This document shows, in pieces, positions 50,279 through 60,570 of a DNA stretch of 64,000 nucleotides. The first letter of the stretch is position 1; each line of letters opens with the position of its first letter. Origin of the DNA: Cyanophora paradoxa CCMP329 (lineage: Eukaryota; Plantae; Glaucophyta); assembly GCA_004431415.1 (NCBI GenBank), contig QPMI01000177.1, positions 1-64,000 on the forward strand. The letters are read 5' to 3'. Both the position numbers and the translations under genes were made by a program. The notes beneath the pieces are model-generated. The model saw only the letters and a list, made by a program, of their open reading frames with translations, did no database searches and was not told where the DNA came from.

Positions 50279-53200
50279 TTAAGAGGAAGCGTAGCCAGTC
50301 GAACGGCAGCTGGAATTTGATTTCGCATTCGAGGCTTCAGCGGAGTGCGCCGGTACCGGTACCGGCCGCGGCTGCGCAGGCGCAGCCACGCCGGCGAAGA
50401 CGAGGCGCGTGTCCCTCAGCATGAACCGCAGGTGCCCGCGCCCCACGAAACCGAGTCTCTTCGCAGCCGTCTCCGTGACCTGCTCAAGTCCGTTGGATCA
50501 AATTCCACTTGGCCGCGGACCGCGAGCCTAGAATAAAAGTAAAAATGATATCGCCCGCCTTCAGTTTGCTGAGATGTAGGGAGCTGAGCGACGAGACTGC
50601 TCCGGGGTCCGTGAAGATGGGGAGGGGAGAATCGACCTCCAGGACGTCGAGCGACGGCGCGTCCGACACAAGGCGCTGTGCGGCACGACGTGAGAATTCA
50701 GGAAATTCGAAATCGAACATGAACGAGGGAGTCGAGCACTGCGTGCACCCCGGCTGCGGAATGTCAGCGAGCACGCGCGAAGTGCGTGTACCGTTGCGCG
50801 TGACTATGGCCGAGGCGTGAATTTTGCAGCTGCAGAGGTTGGGCCAGACGAGGCTCGTCGCGGCGAGTCTCTTGAACGCCTCCACGCAGAGACGAAGGTT
50901 GGCGTGCTGTGCAAACAATGCAAACATGCTTAAGAGGCAGATCACTAGGGGCCCGGCCGCGTTTGGCGCGCCGGGGGTGCAAGGGGGGAATCGGGATCTA
51001 ATGAAAGAGTAGTAGTGGCACGAACATGCACGGGGCAGATGTAGATCGACCCCGGCCCAGAGCGCGCGGCAGGTTGAAGTAGTAAAGATAGACACAAGGG
51101 TCCGGCCGAGTCGCTGGAAACAGCGGCGCGTGGGGAGGGGGGCAACCCCCTCCCTGCCTGGCCGGACCTATCCGAGCAAATTTTTTTTTTAGTAAAGATA
51201 GACACAGATTATATATGATTGAAAAGAATAGAAAAGGGCTCAGCGGCTGATATGCAGACGCTGCGATCTAACCGAATAAAGAAAAGCCTGAATGAAAGGC
51301 CAGATTCAGCGCACTGTATATGAAAGGTTGTTCTGGAGCGGAAAAACGCTGTCGAGCATGGGGGTGAGCGGCAGCCAGCGGCGCCGGTCCTGAAGAGAGC
51401 CGTCTTGCGAGAGCATGGTGAGGCGGCCCGCCGCCTCGAGCGCCCGCAGAGCCACGCGGCTGGCGCGCTGCTCGCTCCCGCCGCGCATCTGGTAGACAAG
51501 ATCTTGAATTCGCGAGCAGAGGCTGCGACATCTGGCGGCTGCGAGCAGAGGCTGGATCGCAAGGAAAAGCTACGCGGTACGGGCCAATCCGGCCCACGGG
51601 CTGCGCTTGCTTCGGTGCACGTGCTGCGGTGCAAGCTTGATGCCGCAGTGCAGTCAAAAGTAGTCCAGGCGGCACGGGTACCGTGCGGCGTACGCGGCGC
51701 ACTGCGAGGGAGAATTTTTAAGTAATTCCGTGCGGCGTACGCGGCGCAGTGCGAGGAAGTGGAAATCTAGAGGAGATCGAGCAAGACAGGCTAGGGAGAA
51801 GTGGTTCCATGCAGAACCGCGGAAGGAATTCGAAGACCGGAATGAGAGAGAAGTTGGTTTCCAGGCTTCAAGTCGAGGAAAACTGGCCTTCGCTAGAACC
51901 GCGGAATTCGAAGGAATTCGAAGACCGGAATGAGAGAGAAGTTGGTTTCCATGCTTCAAGTCGAGGAAAACTGGTCTTCGCTAGAACCGCGGAAGGAATT
52001 CGAAGACCGGAATGAGAGAGAAGTTGGTTTCCATGCTTCAAGTCGAGGAAAACTGGTCTTCGCCCTCGAAAACCTTTTTTTGCATGGACGGCCGCAGCGA
52101 CAAACACGTGTCGCTCCCACCGAATTTCGGCACATTTTTGTTGCAAACTGGACCTCGAAAACGGCCTCATAGAAAACTTTTGGCTGAAGCGAGGGAACGG
52201 GAAGCAAGGGGGGGAAGACCTTCGGTCTTCTTTTCCCCCCTTGCAATTAATATTTGGATCAGCCATAGTATAAGTCTACTGATTATAAAGGCGTGCACGA
52301 CTCGCAATCGCATGTCCCACCTCGAGAGACTCGTGGCTGGCGAGGGCGGTCATCAGCTTGGCATCGACAATCATCCTCTCGTCGGCAAGCGTGAGAGAGC
52401 GCAGCGACTGTAATTGGGACAAGACCGAAAAGTCAATGTTAAAGACGTCCTTCCTCACGGAAATCGTCGTGTGCTCGAGAAGAGGCATGCTGTTGAGGAA
52501 GCCCAGCCAGCCCAGCGAAAACAATGGATCGAGGACTGCCATGCAATGCGCACGTGCAAGTGCACGCCATGTATACGTATACGTAATTAAAGAACAGCAT
52601 TGCATGATGTATCGTGTACAAGATATAAACGGCTCACCTCGAAGCTTCGTCAAGGCGCCCAGCGACCGAAGAGCGACTTCGCTTGCCGTCGGCCAAAGCT
52701 GCCCGCCGTGAACTGCCGACCGACAGGAAAGCTGCAGGCGTTCCAGCAAGGTGAACTTCGACGCCGCCACGATTGCTGCCGTGAGGTCATCCCGCTCGCG
52801 ATCGTCGGCCAAAACCGCTCTGAATGAGAGCGCCCGAAGGGTGGAAGCGAGCGGGGCCAGGCCTTCCAGAACAGATGCATGGAGGGGAATGTCCAGATCG
52901 AGAGCCTGATCATGATCATATGCATGAGCTCGAGTTCATGATCAGAAAATCATATGGCCAATTGTACTAGTACGACGGTAATTATAAGCTAAAGCTAAGC
53001 TGAACATGACGCACCTCGAGTTTCGAGAGGAACTGGATGGATGCGAGCGGCTTTCGAAGAATGGACTTGGTGCAATGCGATGAAGCCCATGGCCAAACCG
53101 TAGATTTGAGGCCGATGTGCAGGCTGCGGAGGCTGCCGAGTTTTTTGACGGCCCCCACTCCAGAAAGTTTAACGCCTGTCGCAGCTGCATCGTCGAAGGA

Positions 53201-53613
53201 AACGTACAGCTCCTCCAAATGCTGTCGGAATGCTGAGAAGAGGCGCCCGTAGCCCGCCTGGCTGATGCTGCCGCCCTCTAGAGAGATGCACCGCACGGCC
53301 TTCCGCGCCTTCCACGGCAGCTTCGCCAGCGCATCTACCGCCGCGTCGTTCGGATCCCGCAAAGCCACTCGGTCCCACAGGCCGAGGCTGCCGTCGTTCA
53401 CGATCCGCCGGAACCGCCGGCAGACCGATTTCAGCTTCACGAGCTTGTCCGGCTGCCCGTCCGGCTTGCAATCGATATTGCCGTCGTGTGGGTCGAGAGG
53501 CGACATCCGCCTGCAAACTGGCTTGAAAATCCGGGCCCCCCGCGTGGCCAGGAACAGCATGCGGCCCAGTACTTCGTCTGGCAGCACATCCAGCGGGCTG
53601 CCGCCGGCCATCA
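50279..53613 (-). CDS. F-box-like / LRR-like protein, paralog 2; apparently intact, with a Helitron-type element in one intron
   Basis: GGSPLDVLPDEVLGRML...LVKLKSVCRRFRRIVNDGSL. Exons are collinear with paralog 1 on both sides of the insertion (ESLE|HANLRL; RLVSDAPSL vs RLASDVPSL; VTETAAKRL vs VSSGAAEHM). TAA at 50279-50281. Confidence 0.75.
51097..51189 (+). mobile_element. 93-bp structured, oligo(T)-tailed SINE-like insertion with 17-bp TSD
   Basis: TAGTAAAGATAGACACA at 51080-51096 and 51190-51206; absent from the homologous site near 63170; hairpins closed by GAAA and GCAA tetraloops. Confidence 0.75.
51813..52062. repeat. ~82-bp tandem repeat, three copies, inside the Helitron
   Basis: AGAACCGCGGAAGGAATTCGAAGACCGGAATGAGAGAGAAGTTGGTTTCC... 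repeated three times. Confidence 0.9.
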
Positions 53614-54838
53614 TAATAGCCTCCACGATCGACGGACCTGTAGGAGACTATTAAATCACGGTCATGCATGCATATCTTCAACTTAGACTTCAAGGCTTTA
53701 AAATAGAAACTGGCAAGCGCAATGGCAAGGTCGATCAATTCGTTGATCAATGGCAGGCGCACCGCGGCCGCTCGCAATCGTGCACATGGGCGCTTCTGCT
53801 ACGTCGCTCTGCGTGCTCGACGCGCCATGCGCGTACACGTTGCCTGCAGCTGTGATTGGAAAAAATCGATCGCGAAGTTGAAATTTACAAATTTGCAATT
53901 AATATCGGCGCGTGGGCGCAGGTCAATATTAAATATAATCTCGGGCCCGGGCGCCAACGACGTACGCGCGCCGTCCCGGCCCGCCCGAAAGTCGAAATTC
54001 GAAATCCGCGATCGGAGCATATCATATCTAGAGGGCTGATTACGGAGCACGCGCACCGCTCGCGAAAGCTGCCTCCACTCTGCTGGATATCGATGCGGAG
54101 GCGTGCGTCTCGCATTGCTCGCGCACAAGAACTGCAAGAATCACGCCCGATTGCAATCAGCTCACATCGTCGACCCCTTGATTGCCAAAGCTCACCTTCG
54201 CTGCCGTTTGAATTCGCCGCTGCTCGCGACAGCTTAAGCTTCGCGCTGCTCGAGCTCGAGCTCTCGCGCGCCATTTCGTTTGGGGGATTGAGCGGGGTGC
54301 GGGTACGTTGGCATTGGATCATTAGGGGGGGACTGCGGGAAATTATAATTAAGGGAATAATTCGTGGGGGCCAATTGCAAGAATCAAAGGGATTGAATCG
54401 CGACCGCCGCCGGCGCCGGCCGCGGGCCGGCCGCGGCGCGCGCGGGGGAATTTTCTTTCGCAGTTGGCAATATATATAGTCCAGCGTATATACCGTAGTA
54501 CGTAGCTCGCCTTTCGTGACAAGGTATAAGGCTGTTGGGCTGGAGAGGGACCTCCCCCGGTCAACCTCGAGCTCGTTTCACAGCTAAGATCTTGCGGGCC
54601 TTCCGAAGGCATTCGCGAAAAAGCGGTGCGACGGGGCCGGGGAAATCATCATCATGATAAGGATCGGGAGAGAATTCGATCAGGCTCGGTGCACTGCGCA
54701 TGCAGCAGCCTGCCACGGCCGGCCGGTCGGGGACACTGGCGCACAATATGGACACGGGCCCGGGGGCCGGGTTACAGAAGAAGGCTGCCGGGCTCGAGAG
54801 CCACAGCCGGGGCGGCCACGGGAAGGTTTAGCTCTAGG

Positions 54839-54963
54839 TCAGGGGAGCGGGAAGCCGGGGGCCGAGAAGCGCCACTCCAGGGTACGTGGATCGTACGAGA
54901 TGAAGCGAGCACCCCGCTGCGGCAGATATCAGCGAGGAAGAGGATAGGGGGAGTAGCAGAGAA

Positions 54964-54994
<31 letters not shown>

Positions 54995-57900
54995 GCGGGC
55001 GGGGGCCGGCGCACGTTAAGGCAGTAGCGCTCGAGCTCGAAACGGAGCCGCGAGTAATCATTCCTCCGCCGTACCCCTTTAAGCACGACCAGCGCCGGGC
55101 CCGCCAGCGCCGGAGCTGCGCGGCACGATAAATCTCGCAATAACCTAGCAGGGCGGGGCAGGGGGGGGAGGAAGGGCGCACCCGTGGCGGGGTCCACTCG
55201 GACGCTCCGCTGATGGAACTCAACCGCGCCGGGCAGGCAGGCGCCCCGCAGGTCCAGCGGGCCTACCAAAATCGTGAGATAGGGGAAGGGGGCGTGGGGG
55301 GGGGGTACGGGATGAGTGGGCGTACCATCCCACGTGATGCTGCCGCGCTCAGGATGCGAGACCTGGCGGAAGGAGGGCAAGCTCAGGGGCACGCAATTTT
55401 CGGGTCGTTCTAGGGGGGGATACCGTGAAGCGGCGGACGGAGGCGAGCTCGGCGGGGGACATGGCGGAGAGGGCCGCGGCGGGGGGGTACGTGACCAGGG
55501 GCGGGGGGAGGGGTACGATGTGGCTCGGCCCGGTGCGTGTCGACGATTCGAAGGCAGTGGGGAACGCCGCCCGCCGCCCAGGGGACGTGCCAGCGGGAGG
55601 GTACGCGGACGGGGGTGCGGGCGCGAAGCGGGGGGAGGCGGCGCCGGGGGATACCGACGCGGCGGCGAATGCGGCCTCGAGCCGCTCCATCCGCTCCTCG
55701 CTCAGCGTGCGGGCCGGTCGCGCGCGCGCCCGCGGCGCGCCCACACGGACGGCGCGCCGCGGGCGGCCGCGGGGAGCCTCCGCCTCTTCCGAGCGGCCCG
55801 GCTCGAAAAGCCGCGCCGGCGACCCCTCGGCCGCCAGCGGGGGTGGGGAGGCCGGGGGCACATCATCAGAAGCGCCGGGCCCGCCGGACGCCGATCCGCC
55901 GGAGGAAGCCGCGGGAGGTGAGGCGGGTGCTCCTCCGAAGACGAACGGGGTCGCCGGGTCCGGCGAAGGTGGGAGGGGAGAAGAGGAGAGAGGGCGAGCC
56001 TCAGTCGCGGAGAGGGGGCTGACGAGGGGGGGCCCAGACGCCTCGGCGGCTCCCGCTCCGGCCCCAGCGGGCGGCTGAGACGTCGACGCAGCGCCCTCTG
56101 ACGCCGGCGGGGCCGGAGAGACGGCGGGTACCAAGGGCGCCGTCTCGTCCGAACCCGAGGAGGGCCGCGGGGGCACGCCGCCTCCGAAGACGAAGGGGGC
56201 CGGGCTCGTGGGGGGAGGGGAGGCGGGGGAGCCGAAAATGAAGGAGGGTACCGGGCTGGAAGGGGAGGGGGAGGGGGGGAGCTCGGCCGCGCCAGGCGAG
56301 GAGAAGGTGAAGGAATGGCGCGCAGGGGCAGGGGCAGGGGCAAGGGAAGGGGTAGGGGCCCGGGGCGGGGAGGGGGAGAACGAGAAGACGGGCGGGGAGC
56401 CGGGGCCGGAGTTGGGCGAGCTCGCCCCGGCGGCCGCCGCGGCGCCGCCGAAGGAGAAGGACGGGCGGCTGGGGTCGGCGGGCCCCGCGGGGGAAGAAGG
56501 AGAGGCAAAGGGCGAGAACGCCTGAGGGGGACGGGGCGGGGCCGCCTCGGCTGCCGCGGCGGGGCGGTCCGGCCGGGCCGAGCCGAGGGCAGGGAAGGAG
56601 AAGTGGGGAGAGGCGGGGGCGCGGGGCAGGGAAGGGAACGGGGCGAAGCCGGAGGGGAGGGGGAAGTAGTACAGAGCGGGGGCGGGGCGGGCGGGAGGGG
56701 GCGACGGGGCGAAGGCGGGTGGGGGATCGGGTCGAGCGAGGCGGGGGCGGGGGCGGGGGGCGCCTGCAGGGTACGCAGGGTGGATGCCTTGGGACGCAGT
56801 CGCACCGGAAGACGGGGGGTACTGGGGGTGCCGGAGGGCGCGGAGGCGGGGACGCCGGCGCACGAGGCGAGGAGGGCGGGGGGGAGGGCGAAGAGGAGGG
56901 GGAGGGGCGGGGGCGGGGGCGTCGGGCGGCCCGGGCCGTCGTCGGGCGCGCGCGCGGGGCCGGGGCAGGCCGGGGGCCCGTCAGGAGCAGAGGGGGGCTG
57001 GAGGAGAAAAGGGGTACGGCGGAGGGCCCGAAACGGATCTCTCCGACAGGCGAGGGCGGGTCGAACGAGATCGCGTCCTGCGGGGGTACATGCTCGAGCA
57101 CGGAAGGGGAGGGGGAGGGGGGCGAGGGGGGTACGCTCACGGGAGCCGCGGCGGCAGCGGAGAGGGCGCGGGCGGCCTCCGCAGCGGACGGTCGCTTGGT
57201 CGGCTCCTGGTCCCACATCCGCCGAATCAGATTCGCCAGCGCAGGTGGCCACGCCGCCAGCTCCGGACGCTCCCCGTTTGCGATGCGGCGCAGCACCTGC
57301 GCCGGCCGAGCTCGGCGGGGGAGAAGGGGAGAAGGCGAGGGGGGGGTACGCCCGCGCACATCCATCGGGGGGAGGTCCGGGAAGGGCGGTCGGCCGGAGA
57401 GGGCCTCGTTGAAGAGGACCGCTGCGGCGAAGACGTCCGCAGCCGGCGTCGGCCTGCGCCGGACGCGGTCGGCTGGGCGCGGAGAGCAAGCTTGGAAAGG
57501 GGGGTACAGGGGCGGCGGACGGACCTAGGCGCGATGGACGTGAGCAGCTCCGGGGCGCTGTAGGCGTCGGCGCCGGCGGGCTCAGAGGCGCCCACGTCGG
57601 CAATCTGAGCGGGGAAGATAAGCCCTGGAAGAGAGCGGCGAGTCCGCCGGGAGGGGCGCGCCTTGTAGGCGCGGGAGGCTCCTGTCGCTCCGAAGATCTG
57701 GGGAGGGGTACGGCGGTTCACATCAGCAGGTCCAGGAAGAAGCGGGGGTACGAGGGCGGGGGCGGGGAGCGCACGAGGACGTTGGGGGGCCGGAGGCGGC
57801 CGTGGGCTGCGCCGCAGCGCCCGTGGAGGAACGCGAGCCCGGCCGCCACCTGCCGCGCTGCGCCCGCGCCGGCTCGCCTCTCGAGAGGGGGGTACGCGAG

Positions 57901-58860
57901 GCGCTGAGTCGAGGGCGCGCGCACCGCAGTCGAGGGCCTCTGCGGGGGAGATCCGAGCGGAGCGGAGGCTTCCCGAGGCGCGCTCGCACACCACCGCGAA
58001 GCGCTCGCGGGGCGCAGCCACGAGGCCGTAGACCTGTACCCGGGGTCGCCGGCGAGCCCGGGCGGGGCGCGGCTGCGGGCAGCGGGGCGTGCGTGCCTGG
58101 ACAATCGATGGATGACGCAGCTTTCTGCGCGCGGGCCGCGCGTCGAGTGGTGTCCGGCCGCGGGAGAGCGGGGCCCGCTCACCCCGCGGCGGCGGCCTGC
58201 CTTCGGAGCGCGGTGCGGAGCTCTTCGGCCTCGCGCTCGCCCGCCGGAATGAGGAGCTCCCGAAGCGCGACGGCGTGGCCCGCCCACGCCCCCGCCAGCA
58301 CGCGCGTCCCGCCGCCCGGCCGGCGCCCGATCTCTGCCGCCCGGTCGACGAGCGTGGCGCGCCGCGGAACGAACAGCGCACGAACCGCGGCCCCTCGTCA
58401 CGTCGGTGGCGGGAACTACGTGCAGCTGCTCCGAGCTCGAGTCTCCTGCGCACGCGGCCGGCTCGATCAGCGCGCGCGAATTCAAAAGCGCAAACGAGGC
58501 GGGAGGGAGCGCACGAACGGTTTTGAGCAGATCGCGCATCGTGGTGTTCACCGGGAGCGGAATCGGAATCGTCACGCTCGCCCGGCAGACGGGGCACTGG
58601 ACCCGCGCCGAGTTGCAATTCGCCGCGTCTGCGCGGTGCCTCATCCAGGACTGCACCCGCTGCAGCTGCTCCCACTGCTGCTCAGCGTTTTTCACGCCGG
58701 GGAGCTCGCGGATGCAGCTGCGGCAAAAGCTGTGGTTGCAGACCAGCGTCGTCGGCTCCTCGAGCGCGTCGAGGCAAACGCCGCAGTTGAATTCGTGATG
58801 CTCATGGTCACCCGCTAGAACACCCGCGTGGCTGGCTGTCGCCCGCATCGGGACAGCCAT
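54839..58860 (-). CDS. RING finger - TKL-like pseudokinase - FxFG/Pro-rich region - Nup98/Nup145N peptidase-S59-like domain fusion
   Basis: C3HC4 RING CGVC..LVCNHSFCRSC..CPVC; kinase LRHPSIVQVYG, LAFLH..HGRLRPPNVL, IADVG, YSAPE, DVFAAAVL, MWDQEPTKRPS; FSFG/FIFG/FVFG repeats; C-terminal VRRFTVSHPERGSITWDGPLDL...GARFISYDPRTLEWRFSAPGFPLP*. Confidence 0.8.
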
Positions 58861-58902
58861 GGCCAGTACCGGTACCCGGCTGATATCGGTCCCCCCGGAC
58901 AA

Positions 58903-60570
58903 ATGGCGAACGAGCTCGAGAGCCGTGCGAAGCGGGCGCGCACGGCATCACACAGTGAAGGTAAGCTCGGCGGTAGATCGATAGCTGAGGTCTGCGCCGC
59001 CGGCTGAGCGCCGCGCGCTTTCCCTCGCGCGCCGCGGCCGGCGCAGCGGGAGGCGATGCGAGCGAGCAGGCCGGCCACGGGACGCACCGCTTCGCATCGA
59101 GCAGCGATGCAGCCTCGTCCGCGAGCGGTGCGCTTGCCGTTCGGCCGCCCGCAGCTCGATCGCGAGCTCGATATCGATGATTCGAATTCAAATCGTTGAC
59201 CGTGGCCGTGCGCGCGCGATATTGATCCATTGCAGACAATAGCGCATGCTCAGCGAAGGTTGCGAGTGGTCTTTCAAGCAGAGGAGCAGCTCCGCCGAGC
59301 GTTGGAGCGGTGATGGCGGCGCCGGCCGCGGCCGGCGGCAGCCCGCTGGACCTTCTGCCGGACGAGTTGCTGAGCCGCGTGCTGTTCGAGGCGGCGCGGC
59401 GAGACTGGACCGAGCGGCCAGTGTGCGCGGGGACATCGCTGCTCGACCCGGGAGACGACGAGCCCGACGTGCAGCCCGAGGAGCTCGTGAAGCTGAAGGC
59501 GGTGTGCCGTCGGTTCCGGCGAGTCATCGATGATGGCAGCCTGTGGGGCCGCGTGGCTCTGTGGGAGCCGAACGACGTCGACGCGGCGCTGGATGCGCTG
59601 ACGAAGCTGCCGGAGAAGGCGAGGGCATCCATCCAGCGCGTCGTTCTTAATGCAGCCAACACCAGCATCACATCCACTGGTCTCTGCAAGCTGGCAGCAG
59701 CTCTTCGTGATCAGATCGAGGAATTCAGCATTTTCTTCACTGAAGCAAACAGCGACGCTGATCATGATCGGTTTCCCTTTGTTGGGATCGTTCCAATCAT
59801 CACCATGCAGCGTCTCCGCAGTCTTTGCTTTGGGGTGTGTGAGCACCCGTCGGCGTTCGTTTCAGCATTCACAACGCCTTCCGTTCGGGAGTCCATATGC
59901 ATGTCGTTTATATCCTTCCTTCCGGATCTTCAGGTCCGGGAACCGTGACTCTCGATCTAAATTTCCGATTAGTGATCATGAACTCTAGATCTAGATCTGA
60001 ACCTTGCAGTCCGATTCTTATTCCGACATGTCCCAGATGCTCGAACTTGACATGCCTCTTCCTATCTCTGTCCTAGAAGCTCTAGATCTCGCTTCCGGTC
60101 CCTTCGCTTCCTCGCTCCGAGGGCTGGCTTTTCGCGCCGTGTTCAATGCAGACGAGCATCCAGCAGCAGTTTTCGCTGCAGCAGCCAAGTTCAAGTCTCT
60201 GGAGAGGCTGGCGCTCTCGTTCTTCCGCACGGACTCGGACGATCCAGACGCGTCCCTCCCCGCTTTTCTCCACCCCGATGCTCTACGCCCGCTGGGCAGC
60301 CTCGTGCATATGCAAGGTGAGTTAATTCTTATATAAGTTGCGAGGTTCAAATTCGATCGTTGATTTATATATCTCGCTGAATCGCTGATCATTTGACTGC
60401 AGAGCTTCGAATAGACGGGTTTCTCGGTTGGATTGGATTTATCTCCACTATGCCTCGACTGCACTCCCTTCTCATCTCTATGGATCAGAAAACAGCGGGG
60501 ATTGTCATTGACACGCGGCCTCTTCTTGCGGCTGCCAGTCTCAGGTCGCTTGTCCTTGACTACATTTCTC
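58903..60570 (+). pseudogene. F-box-like / LRR-like protein, paralog 3, truncated at its 3' end by Helitron-derived sequence
   Basis: First exon MANELESRAKRART; GGSPLDLLPDELLSRVL...VCRRFRRVIDDGSLW. Similarity to the paralogs stops after SLRSLVLDY and the downstream exons are not found. Confidence 0.7.

Follow-up and report, generated by a model that had tools for sequence, protein, structure and literature searches.

What kind of protein is encoded by a gene of the glaucophyte Cyanophora paradoxa CCMP329 in which a RING finger, a kinase fold, a region of FxFG motifs and a domain of the nucleoporin Nup98 appear to follow one another, and where in the cell would such a protein act? The gene lies on contig QPMI01000177.1 (GenBank assembly GCA_004431415.1), within positions 1 to 64,000, a stretch of 64,000 nucleotides (nt) referred to here as the window. 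All coordinates are those of the window, and all parts of the gene are on its minus strand. From the letters of the window, the original prediction held that the four parts are spliced into a single protein, either an E3 ubiquitin ligase tethered at the nuclear pore or a nucleoporin decoy. The analysis described here indicates that the gene is expressed and spliced, that it very probably encodes all four parts in one polypeptide, and that the product may be a RING ligase docked at the nuclear pore by a Nup98-type domain that is predicted to have lost the capacity to cleave itself.

Domain content of the encoded protein

The coding region (54839..58860) comprises 16 exons with 997 codons and a TGA stop codon, and extends from an ATG at 58860-58858 to the stop at 54841-54839. 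When joined, the exons yield one open reading frame (ORF) of 997 amino acids in which the only stop is the terminal one. The model is identical over its full length to the EukProt Cyanophora paradoxa protein tig00000760_g3937.t1 (termed P0001, 997 residues), which was recovered at 100% identity when exon 1 was searched against 1.84 billion representatives. Since the two are identical, the annotators' pipeline had picked the same 15 introns. Pfam, PDB and paralogue comparisons of the joined protein were carried out on P0001.

The C-terminal residues 877-997 (54842..55492) form a Nup98-type autoproteolytic (S59) domain, as assessed by Pfam family PF04096 (Nucleoporin2, Nup98-96 autopeptidase S59), by the PDB entries of Nup145N and Nup98 and by language-model features. 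The domain is encoded by five exons (55424-55492, 55326-55362, 55182-55262, 55015-55115 and 54842-54916), and the introns within it at 55116-55181 and 54917-55014 are supported by RNA. The hidden Markov model of PF04096 matched whole P0001 with an expect value (E) of 5.3e-11 and 43.3 bits, and residues 850-997 alone with an E of 5.8e-13 and 49.7 bits, both above the curated cut-off of 28.4 bits. The match covers residues 877-992 and positions 6-141 of the 148 in the profile, and the resemblance to the Nup98 domain that had been read from the sequence is thereby borne out. In a PDB sequence search, Chaetomium Nup145N (E 0.011) and also Nup98 (E 0.15) were each matched once, colinearly and over the full domain, with designed repeat proteins ranked higher through artefactual summing. 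The language-model features of the domain scored 0.95 against S59 clusters. In family and PDB searches carried out exon by exon, the last exon alone had PF04096 as its top family (E 0.017, profile positions 123-143), and the other four of the five Nup-like exons had no match.

The last exon (54842-54916) also matched Kelch_1 in the family search. Its sequence SYDPRTLEWRFSAP resembles the Kelch-repeat consensus, and with designed six-blade proteins it reached E values as low as 6e-15 over the whole sequence, although the single matches are insignificant. A Kelch identity was rejected because the PDB value of 1e-15 is one 14-residue match (YDPxTxEW) summed over six identical repeats, and a TPR identity, suggested by designed TPR proteins in the PDB search, was rejected as the same repeat-summing artefact. 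Summed E values mislead when short queries are compared with repeat proteins and have to be treated with caution.

Profile positions 142-144 are occupied by Gly993-Phe994-Pro995 (54848..54856), which are followed by Leu-Pro and the stop, and there is no Nup96 part downstream of the domain. We take Gly-Phe-Pro to stand in the place of the His-Phe-Ser (HFS) cleavage motif, assuming a register between the human NUP98 C terminus and GARFISYDPRTLEWRFSAPGFP, together with the profile coordinates. The replacement of HFS by GFP that was originally proposed is thus confirmed as to the residues found at these positions, and their alignment to HFS is presumed. With Gly-Phe-Pro in this position and no Nup96 part, the S59 domain is predicted to be unable to cleave.

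At the other end of the protein, residues 26-92 (58585..58785) form a C3HC4 RING in which all eight zinc ligands are present (C26-x2-C29-x11-C41-x-H43-x2-C46-x2-C49-x39-C89-x2-C92), as judged by Pfam and by an alignment to a paralogue, P0009 (described below), in which every ligand is matched. On P0001, zf-C3HC4_4 matched residues 26-53 with an E of 2.5e-8 and 34.4 bits (cut-off 30; E 8e-9 on the raw ORF) and zf-C3HC4 scored 31.1 bits (cut-off 21). The earlier assignment of a C3HC4 RING is therefore upheld both by the full ligand pattern and by a Pfam match above the curated cut-off. The second RING loop is 39 residues long and contains a 19-residue insert that is not present in P0009. An Arg directly follows the last RING Cys (CPVCR), at the usual place of the RING 'linchpin', and it is the sole indication of E2-dependent ubiquitin transfer.

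A kinase-fold domain follows at residues ~130-375 (exons 2-10, 57159..58404). Pfam Pkinase matched residues 152-371 of P0001 with an E of 9.7e-19 and 68.2 bits (cut-off 31.7). When the raw ORFs had been submitted to Pfam, only a weak kinase C-lobe was found besides the RING, and the Nup-like pieces had no match. A guide to this domain is given by the Cyanophora paralogue tig00000788_g4078 (P0009, 531 residues), which is 38% identical over 363 residues, including a conserved linker after the RING, and which has an intact kinase (Pkinase 139.8 bits) with the motifs VALK, HRD and DFG. Compared with P0009, the beta3 Lys motif VALK has become VALR (residues 157-160, 58260-58271), the alpha-C Glu has become Gln (RRQAAAA, 58185-58205, for RREAAIL), the catalytic loop reads HGRLRPPN (residues 250-257, 57781-57804) for HRDVKPGN, the Mg-binding motif is DVG (residues 274-276, 57590-57598) for DFG, and the Gly-rich loop (GRRPGGG, for GHGAMG) is disrupted by an insertion. 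The APE motif (57548-57556) is kept in both genes, and its retention along with the DFG Asp and the catalytic-loop Asn gives a pattern of loss that is typical of pseudokinases. The changes to VALR, HGR and DVG had been noticed in the original prediction and agree with the comparison to P0009, and the alpha-C replacement and the disrupted Gly-rich loop are additional losses that it had missed.

By these motifs the kinase domain is a pseudokinase. Because the paralogue has an intact kinase with its catalytic motifs, the gene descends from a local RING-kinase family, and the kinase was inactivated in this lineage of the family. P0009 was the only one of the best 150 RING matches that also matches the kinase, and its tail of 177 residues is unrelated and contains neither FG motifs nor a Nup domain. 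In P0009 and P0151 (tig00000788_g4078.t1 and.t2), the kinase is apparently active, and the tail has faint ubiquitin-like and VP9 matches (E about 0.05).

The pseudokinase and the S59 domain are connected by a disordered stretch rich in Pro (26%), Ala (18%) and Ser (15%) at residues 376-876 (55493..57158), in which no Pfam family was matched. Residues 555-729 (55934..56458) of this stretch contain a cluster of FxFG type with four FxFG and two FxFS motifs. All six that had been listed before were located, namely FSFG at 555, FSFS at 579, FTFS at 604, FIFG at 627 and FVFG at both 643 and 726, with the first five spaced 16-25 residues apart. FxF[G/S] motifs are confined to the coding frame, none being encoded when this DNA is read in either of the remaining two, and six of them were reached in 0 of 20,000 composition-preserving shuffles. 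The linker thus has an apparent phenylalanine-glycine (FG) character, yet it is much sparser in motifs than a transport-barrier nucleoporin.

Transcription and splicing

Four public sequencing runs were aligned on 54300-59300. Three of these (X1, X4 and X5, representing three samples from two studies) are RNA-like, and the fourth (X8) is DNA, because the intron positions are not skipped in it. In the contigs of X1, X4 and X5, introns appear as short skips with CT..AC or CT..GC ends on the plus strand, equivalent to GT..AG or GC..AG on the minus strand. Among the joints listed, 12 of the 15 introns in the model have RNA joints, and none has one in the DNA run. The supported introns are at 58445-58513, 58334-58385, 58125-58182, 58033-58095, 57858-57924 and 57698-57774, and at 57605-57661, 57453-57523, 57293-57355, 57077-57139, 55116-55181 and 54917-55014, where boundaries were shifted by up to 4 nt if a joint was ambiguous. 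The remaining three introns are predicted. Two of them, at 55363-55423 and 55263-55325, are bounded by GT..AG and leave the frame intact, and the third, at the end of the kinase part, is considered below. One contig of 1226 nt from X4 is spliced from 58845 through all of the RING and kinase exons to ~56980, and unspliced RNA contigs of similar depth cover 56930-57076, 56390-56594, 55814-56210 and 55510-55778. The gene is expressed and spliced.

The introns of the gene are 52-100 nt in length. Two of the 12 with RNA support (57605-57661 and 58033-58095) have GC..AG ends and the others GT..AG, and six of the 12 have the donor GTGCGC. The last intron contains a run of ~35 C on the minus strand (54952-55015). 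This interval was repeat-masked in read mapping, as were 56315-56387 and 56863-56929, and reads are cut at 54952-55015. A second in-frame ATG is found at 58848, downstream of the annotated ATG at 58860. Several long joints (55524-56641, 55859-58050 and others) were rejected as chance joins, their sides being 20-21 nt in low-complexity DNA. The GC content of the region is 65-81% and all three frames of the minus strand are open for hundreds of codons. The motifs of the protein lie in shifting frames of that strand, as expected of a gene with many short introns.

Continuity across the kinase-FG junction

The architecture depends on whether the kinase part and the FG part belong to one protein. 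Removal of the ten upstream introns leaves a clean ORF containing the RING and the kinase-like domain, and the spliced frame has no stop past the kinase until 56004. A frame other than that of the kinase tail encodes the FxFG motifs and the beginning of the Nup-like domain. This second frame opens at 56980 and has no ATG before the first Met at residue 812 (about 55.7 kb). A predicted junction intron of 100 nt (GTGCGCCGGC...CTGCAG, 56764..56863) brings the FG region into register with the kinase tail. Between 57076 and 56560 there is only one GT donor, at 56863 (GTGCGC), that gives a stop-free, frame-restoring intron of 40-160 nt. The first ten bases at this donor are the same as those of the RNA-proven intron 54917-55014, the acceptor has CAG at 56764, and the same intron is used in the public model P0001. 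An analysis of GC content at third codon positions did not tell the frames of the Pro-rich region apart.

The absence of a stop after the kinase, the lack of an ATG in the FG frame, the single frame-restoring donor and the independent public model tie the FG and Nup parts to the RING-kinase part, and the four-part architecture is very probably that of one protein. The contrary reading is of a merged gene model, in which two distinct genes, one for a RING-pseudokinase and the other, a small one, for a Nup98-like protein, arranged head to tail on the same strand, have been joined through an intron that is not used. This is improbable. It draws on the fact that no read or contig crosses 56764-56863 among the joints listed, with 56863-56929 repeat-masked. 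At a GC content of 78-81%, moreover, three frames stay open for >450 codons, so that open frames prove little, and the ATG of the Nup frame at residue 812 could begin a linker and docking domain lacking FG motifs. However, without the junction intron the kinase ORF would run to 56004, deep in the FG region, and the FG frame shows a frame-specific excess of FxFG in spite of having no ATG upstream of residue 812. In addition, RNA is present at similar depth along the whole stretch with no intergenic gap of lower GC content, and the donor is not only unique but also canonical for this gene. With regard to the concern, raised along with the original prediction, that the RING, kinase and Nup parts might lie on separate transcripts, the RING and the kinase were found together on the spliced contig of 1226 nt, and among the joints listed no read links the kinase to the FG and Nup parts.

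Relatives and neighbouring genes

The combination of RING, pseudokinase, FxFG motifs and S59 domain did not recur in any other organism or in any paper covered by the searches. Apart from P0001, the search with exon 1 returned generic RINGs (TRIM-like animal proteins). Word searches gave no match for the FG region, which was swamped by low complexity, none for the RING exon, and only the protein itself for the S59 region of P0001. Metagenome scans revealed no relative, and in full-text literature searches neither an architecture of this kind nor the nucleoporins of Cyanophora were the subject of any paper found. The claim that no such protein had been described therefore held in the searches made, with the qualification that the EukProt model is public and that the RING-kinase arrangement is known from KEG (PMC3697954).

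The gene is flanked by two F-box-like ORFs, one downstream on the same strand (52985-53626, minus) and one upstream and divergent (59310-59945, plus). They are 43% identical to each other (E 4e-38) and match the Pfam F-box-like family with E values of 2e-4 and 1.6e-8, respectively. F-box proteins are likewise parts of ubiquitin ligases.

Discussion

We propose that the protein, taken as the complete four-part chimera, is a RING ligase docked at the nuclear pore by way of a non-cleaving S59 domain, and assign this reading a probability of about 0.5. The S59 domain of Nup98, Nup145N and Nup116 binds the N terminus of Nup96/Nup145C and the propeller of Nup88/Nup82. An S59 domain that lacks its nucleophile could only bind, and occupation of the Nup98 sites on Nup96 or on Nup88/Nup82 would place the protein at the pore. 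The domain would then be purely a docking module, as in yeast Nup100 and Nup116. Through its FxFG motifs, the linker would be able to enter the FG phase or to make contact with it and with transport receptors. Pore proteins, or cargo in transit, would be ubiquitinated by the RING together with an E2 that it recruits, and the dead kinase might serve as a substrate-binding or regulatory scaffold in the way that Tribbles does for COP1. The functions originally suggested for the protein, those of an E3 tethered to the pore or of a decoy nucleoporin, are plausible as hypotheses.

In common with Nup98, Nup145N, Nup100 and Nup116, the C-terminal half has a disordered region with FG-type motifs and, after it, a PF04096 domain at the C terminus. 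The protein resembles yeast Nup100 and Nup116 in terminating with the S59 domain, which has no Nup96 partner from which to be cut. Unlike the Nup98 family, however, the Cyanophora protein has an added N-terminal RING and pseudokinase, and Gly-Phe-Pro replaces His-Phe-Ser. The N-terminal half may be likened, by domain order, to Arabidopsis KEG (Keep on Going), an E3 ligase composed of RING, kinase, ankyrin and HERC2-like parts (PMC3697954). Both have an N-terminal RING that is directly followed by a kinase within one archaeplastid polypeptide, but in the Cyanophora protein the tail consists of FxFG motifs and an S59 domain, the kinase is dead, and a Pfam match to ankyrin or HERC2-like repeats is absent in P0001.

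In plants, the RING E3 HOS1 is one of the structural components of the pore (PMC12626886), and the proposed arrangement would share with it a RING ligase held at the pore by a nucleoporin-type module. HOS1 docks on the Y-complex by an ELYS-like region, whereas this protein would dock by a Nup98-type domain, and the two have no sequence relation past the RING class. Tribbles pseudokinases bring substrates to the COP1 RING ligase (bioRxiv 10.1101/313767), so that a pseudokinase scaffold there works with a RING ligase as two proteins. Here the two would be fused, should the pseudokinase have a similar role. One preprint describes molecular-glue degraders that depend on bringing the RING ligase TRIM21 to the autoproteolytic domain of NUP98 (bioRxiv 10.1101/2025.01.07.631691).

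Several observations weigh against a ligase of this kind at the pore. There are no GLFG repeats in the protein, and neither PF21240, the GLEBS family, nor any other family was matched in residues 372-880 at E up to 0.1, a search that a short motif might escape. The presence of only four FxFG and two FxFS motifs in ~500 residues makes the linker far sparser than those of true FG nucleoporins. A single-sequence AlphaFold2 model of residues 850-997 had a predicted local distance difference test (pLDDT) score of 43.5, and a Foldseek search of the PDB gave no meaningful match to it. RNA depth is low (about 2-8), the RNA contigs all terminate at 58834-58846, those that extend furthest (to 58845/58846) lying 14 nt from the annotated ATG, and the junction intron is the one that no read or contig was seen to cross. 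No orthologue or similar architecture was found in the protein, word and metagenome searches.

Of the other explanations, the one that survives best, though it is unlikely, is that a recent fusion or exon shuffle gave rise to a chimera that has no function under selection, and that this young gene, with its weak transcription, is in decay. This would account for the low RNA depth, for the occurrence in a single species and for the loss of catalytic residues in two domains, and chance would suffice to keep the GC-rich linker open. A decaying gene is, on the other hand, less easily reconciled with 15 introns that all keep the frame, with intact exons of lower GC content (the RING exon and the last five, which include the S59 domain), with eight preserved RING ligands and an S59 core that scores above the Pfam cut-off, or with the pattern of loss in the kinase, which is typically that of a pseudokinase with its APE, DFG Asp and catalytic-loop Asn kept.

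Next in order, and doubtful, is a sensor or decoy ligase from a Cyanophora family of RING-(pseudo)kinases with swapped C-terminal baits, in which a tail that mimics the pore would be seized by viruses or other invaders and so lead to their ubiquitination. P0009, with the same RING-kinase front and a different tail, is consistent with such a family, and the loss of catalytic residues from both the kinase and the S59 domain with retention of the folds is as expected of binding modules. However, there is no evidence of a link to a pathogen and no sign of diversifying copies, with only a single such gene seen. It is equally doubtful that the family is TRIM-like with exchangeable tails and that this member is an 'integrated decoy' of Nup98, to which invaders that take hold of Nup98 or of its docking sites would bind and so become ubiquitinated, which would make it a pore-guarding innate immune ligase in a deep-branching alga.

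More doubtful again is the possibility that the protein serves as the Nup98 orthologue of C. paradoxa and is not an accessory ligase but a structural nucleoporin to which an N-terminal RING and pseudokinase have been added. The order of FG-type motifs and C-terminal S59 domain is that of Nup98, Nup100 and Nup116, and Nup98 paralogues with unusual repeats do exist, such as the NIFN as opposed to GLFG forms of Tetrahymena (PMC5450191). Yet the protein lacks GLFG repeats and a GLEBS family match, has only six FxF[G/S] motifs, and is without both the HFS motif and a Nup96 part, and its domain is divergent from the solved structures of Nup145N and Nup98 (E 0.011-0.15). The merged gene model, already weakened by the frame and RNA evidence at the junction, is the least probable of the alternatives.

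The reading that we favour, a RING ligase docked at the pore by a non-cleaving S59 domain, bears on how pore components are used. Hardly any role other than that of an anchor of FG nucleoporins is known for the autoproteolytic domain of Nup98, and here the domain is found without its protease chemistry, fused to a RING and a dead kinase. If the protein is located at the pore, it would show that a ligase can be incorporated into the pore by a second route, independent of that taken by plant HOS1, and would be a natural counterpart of the drug-induced pairing of TRIM21 with NUP98. It would also provide a tractable case of the reuse of pore-docking modules, in a glaucophyte RING-kinase family that appears to have taken on different tails.

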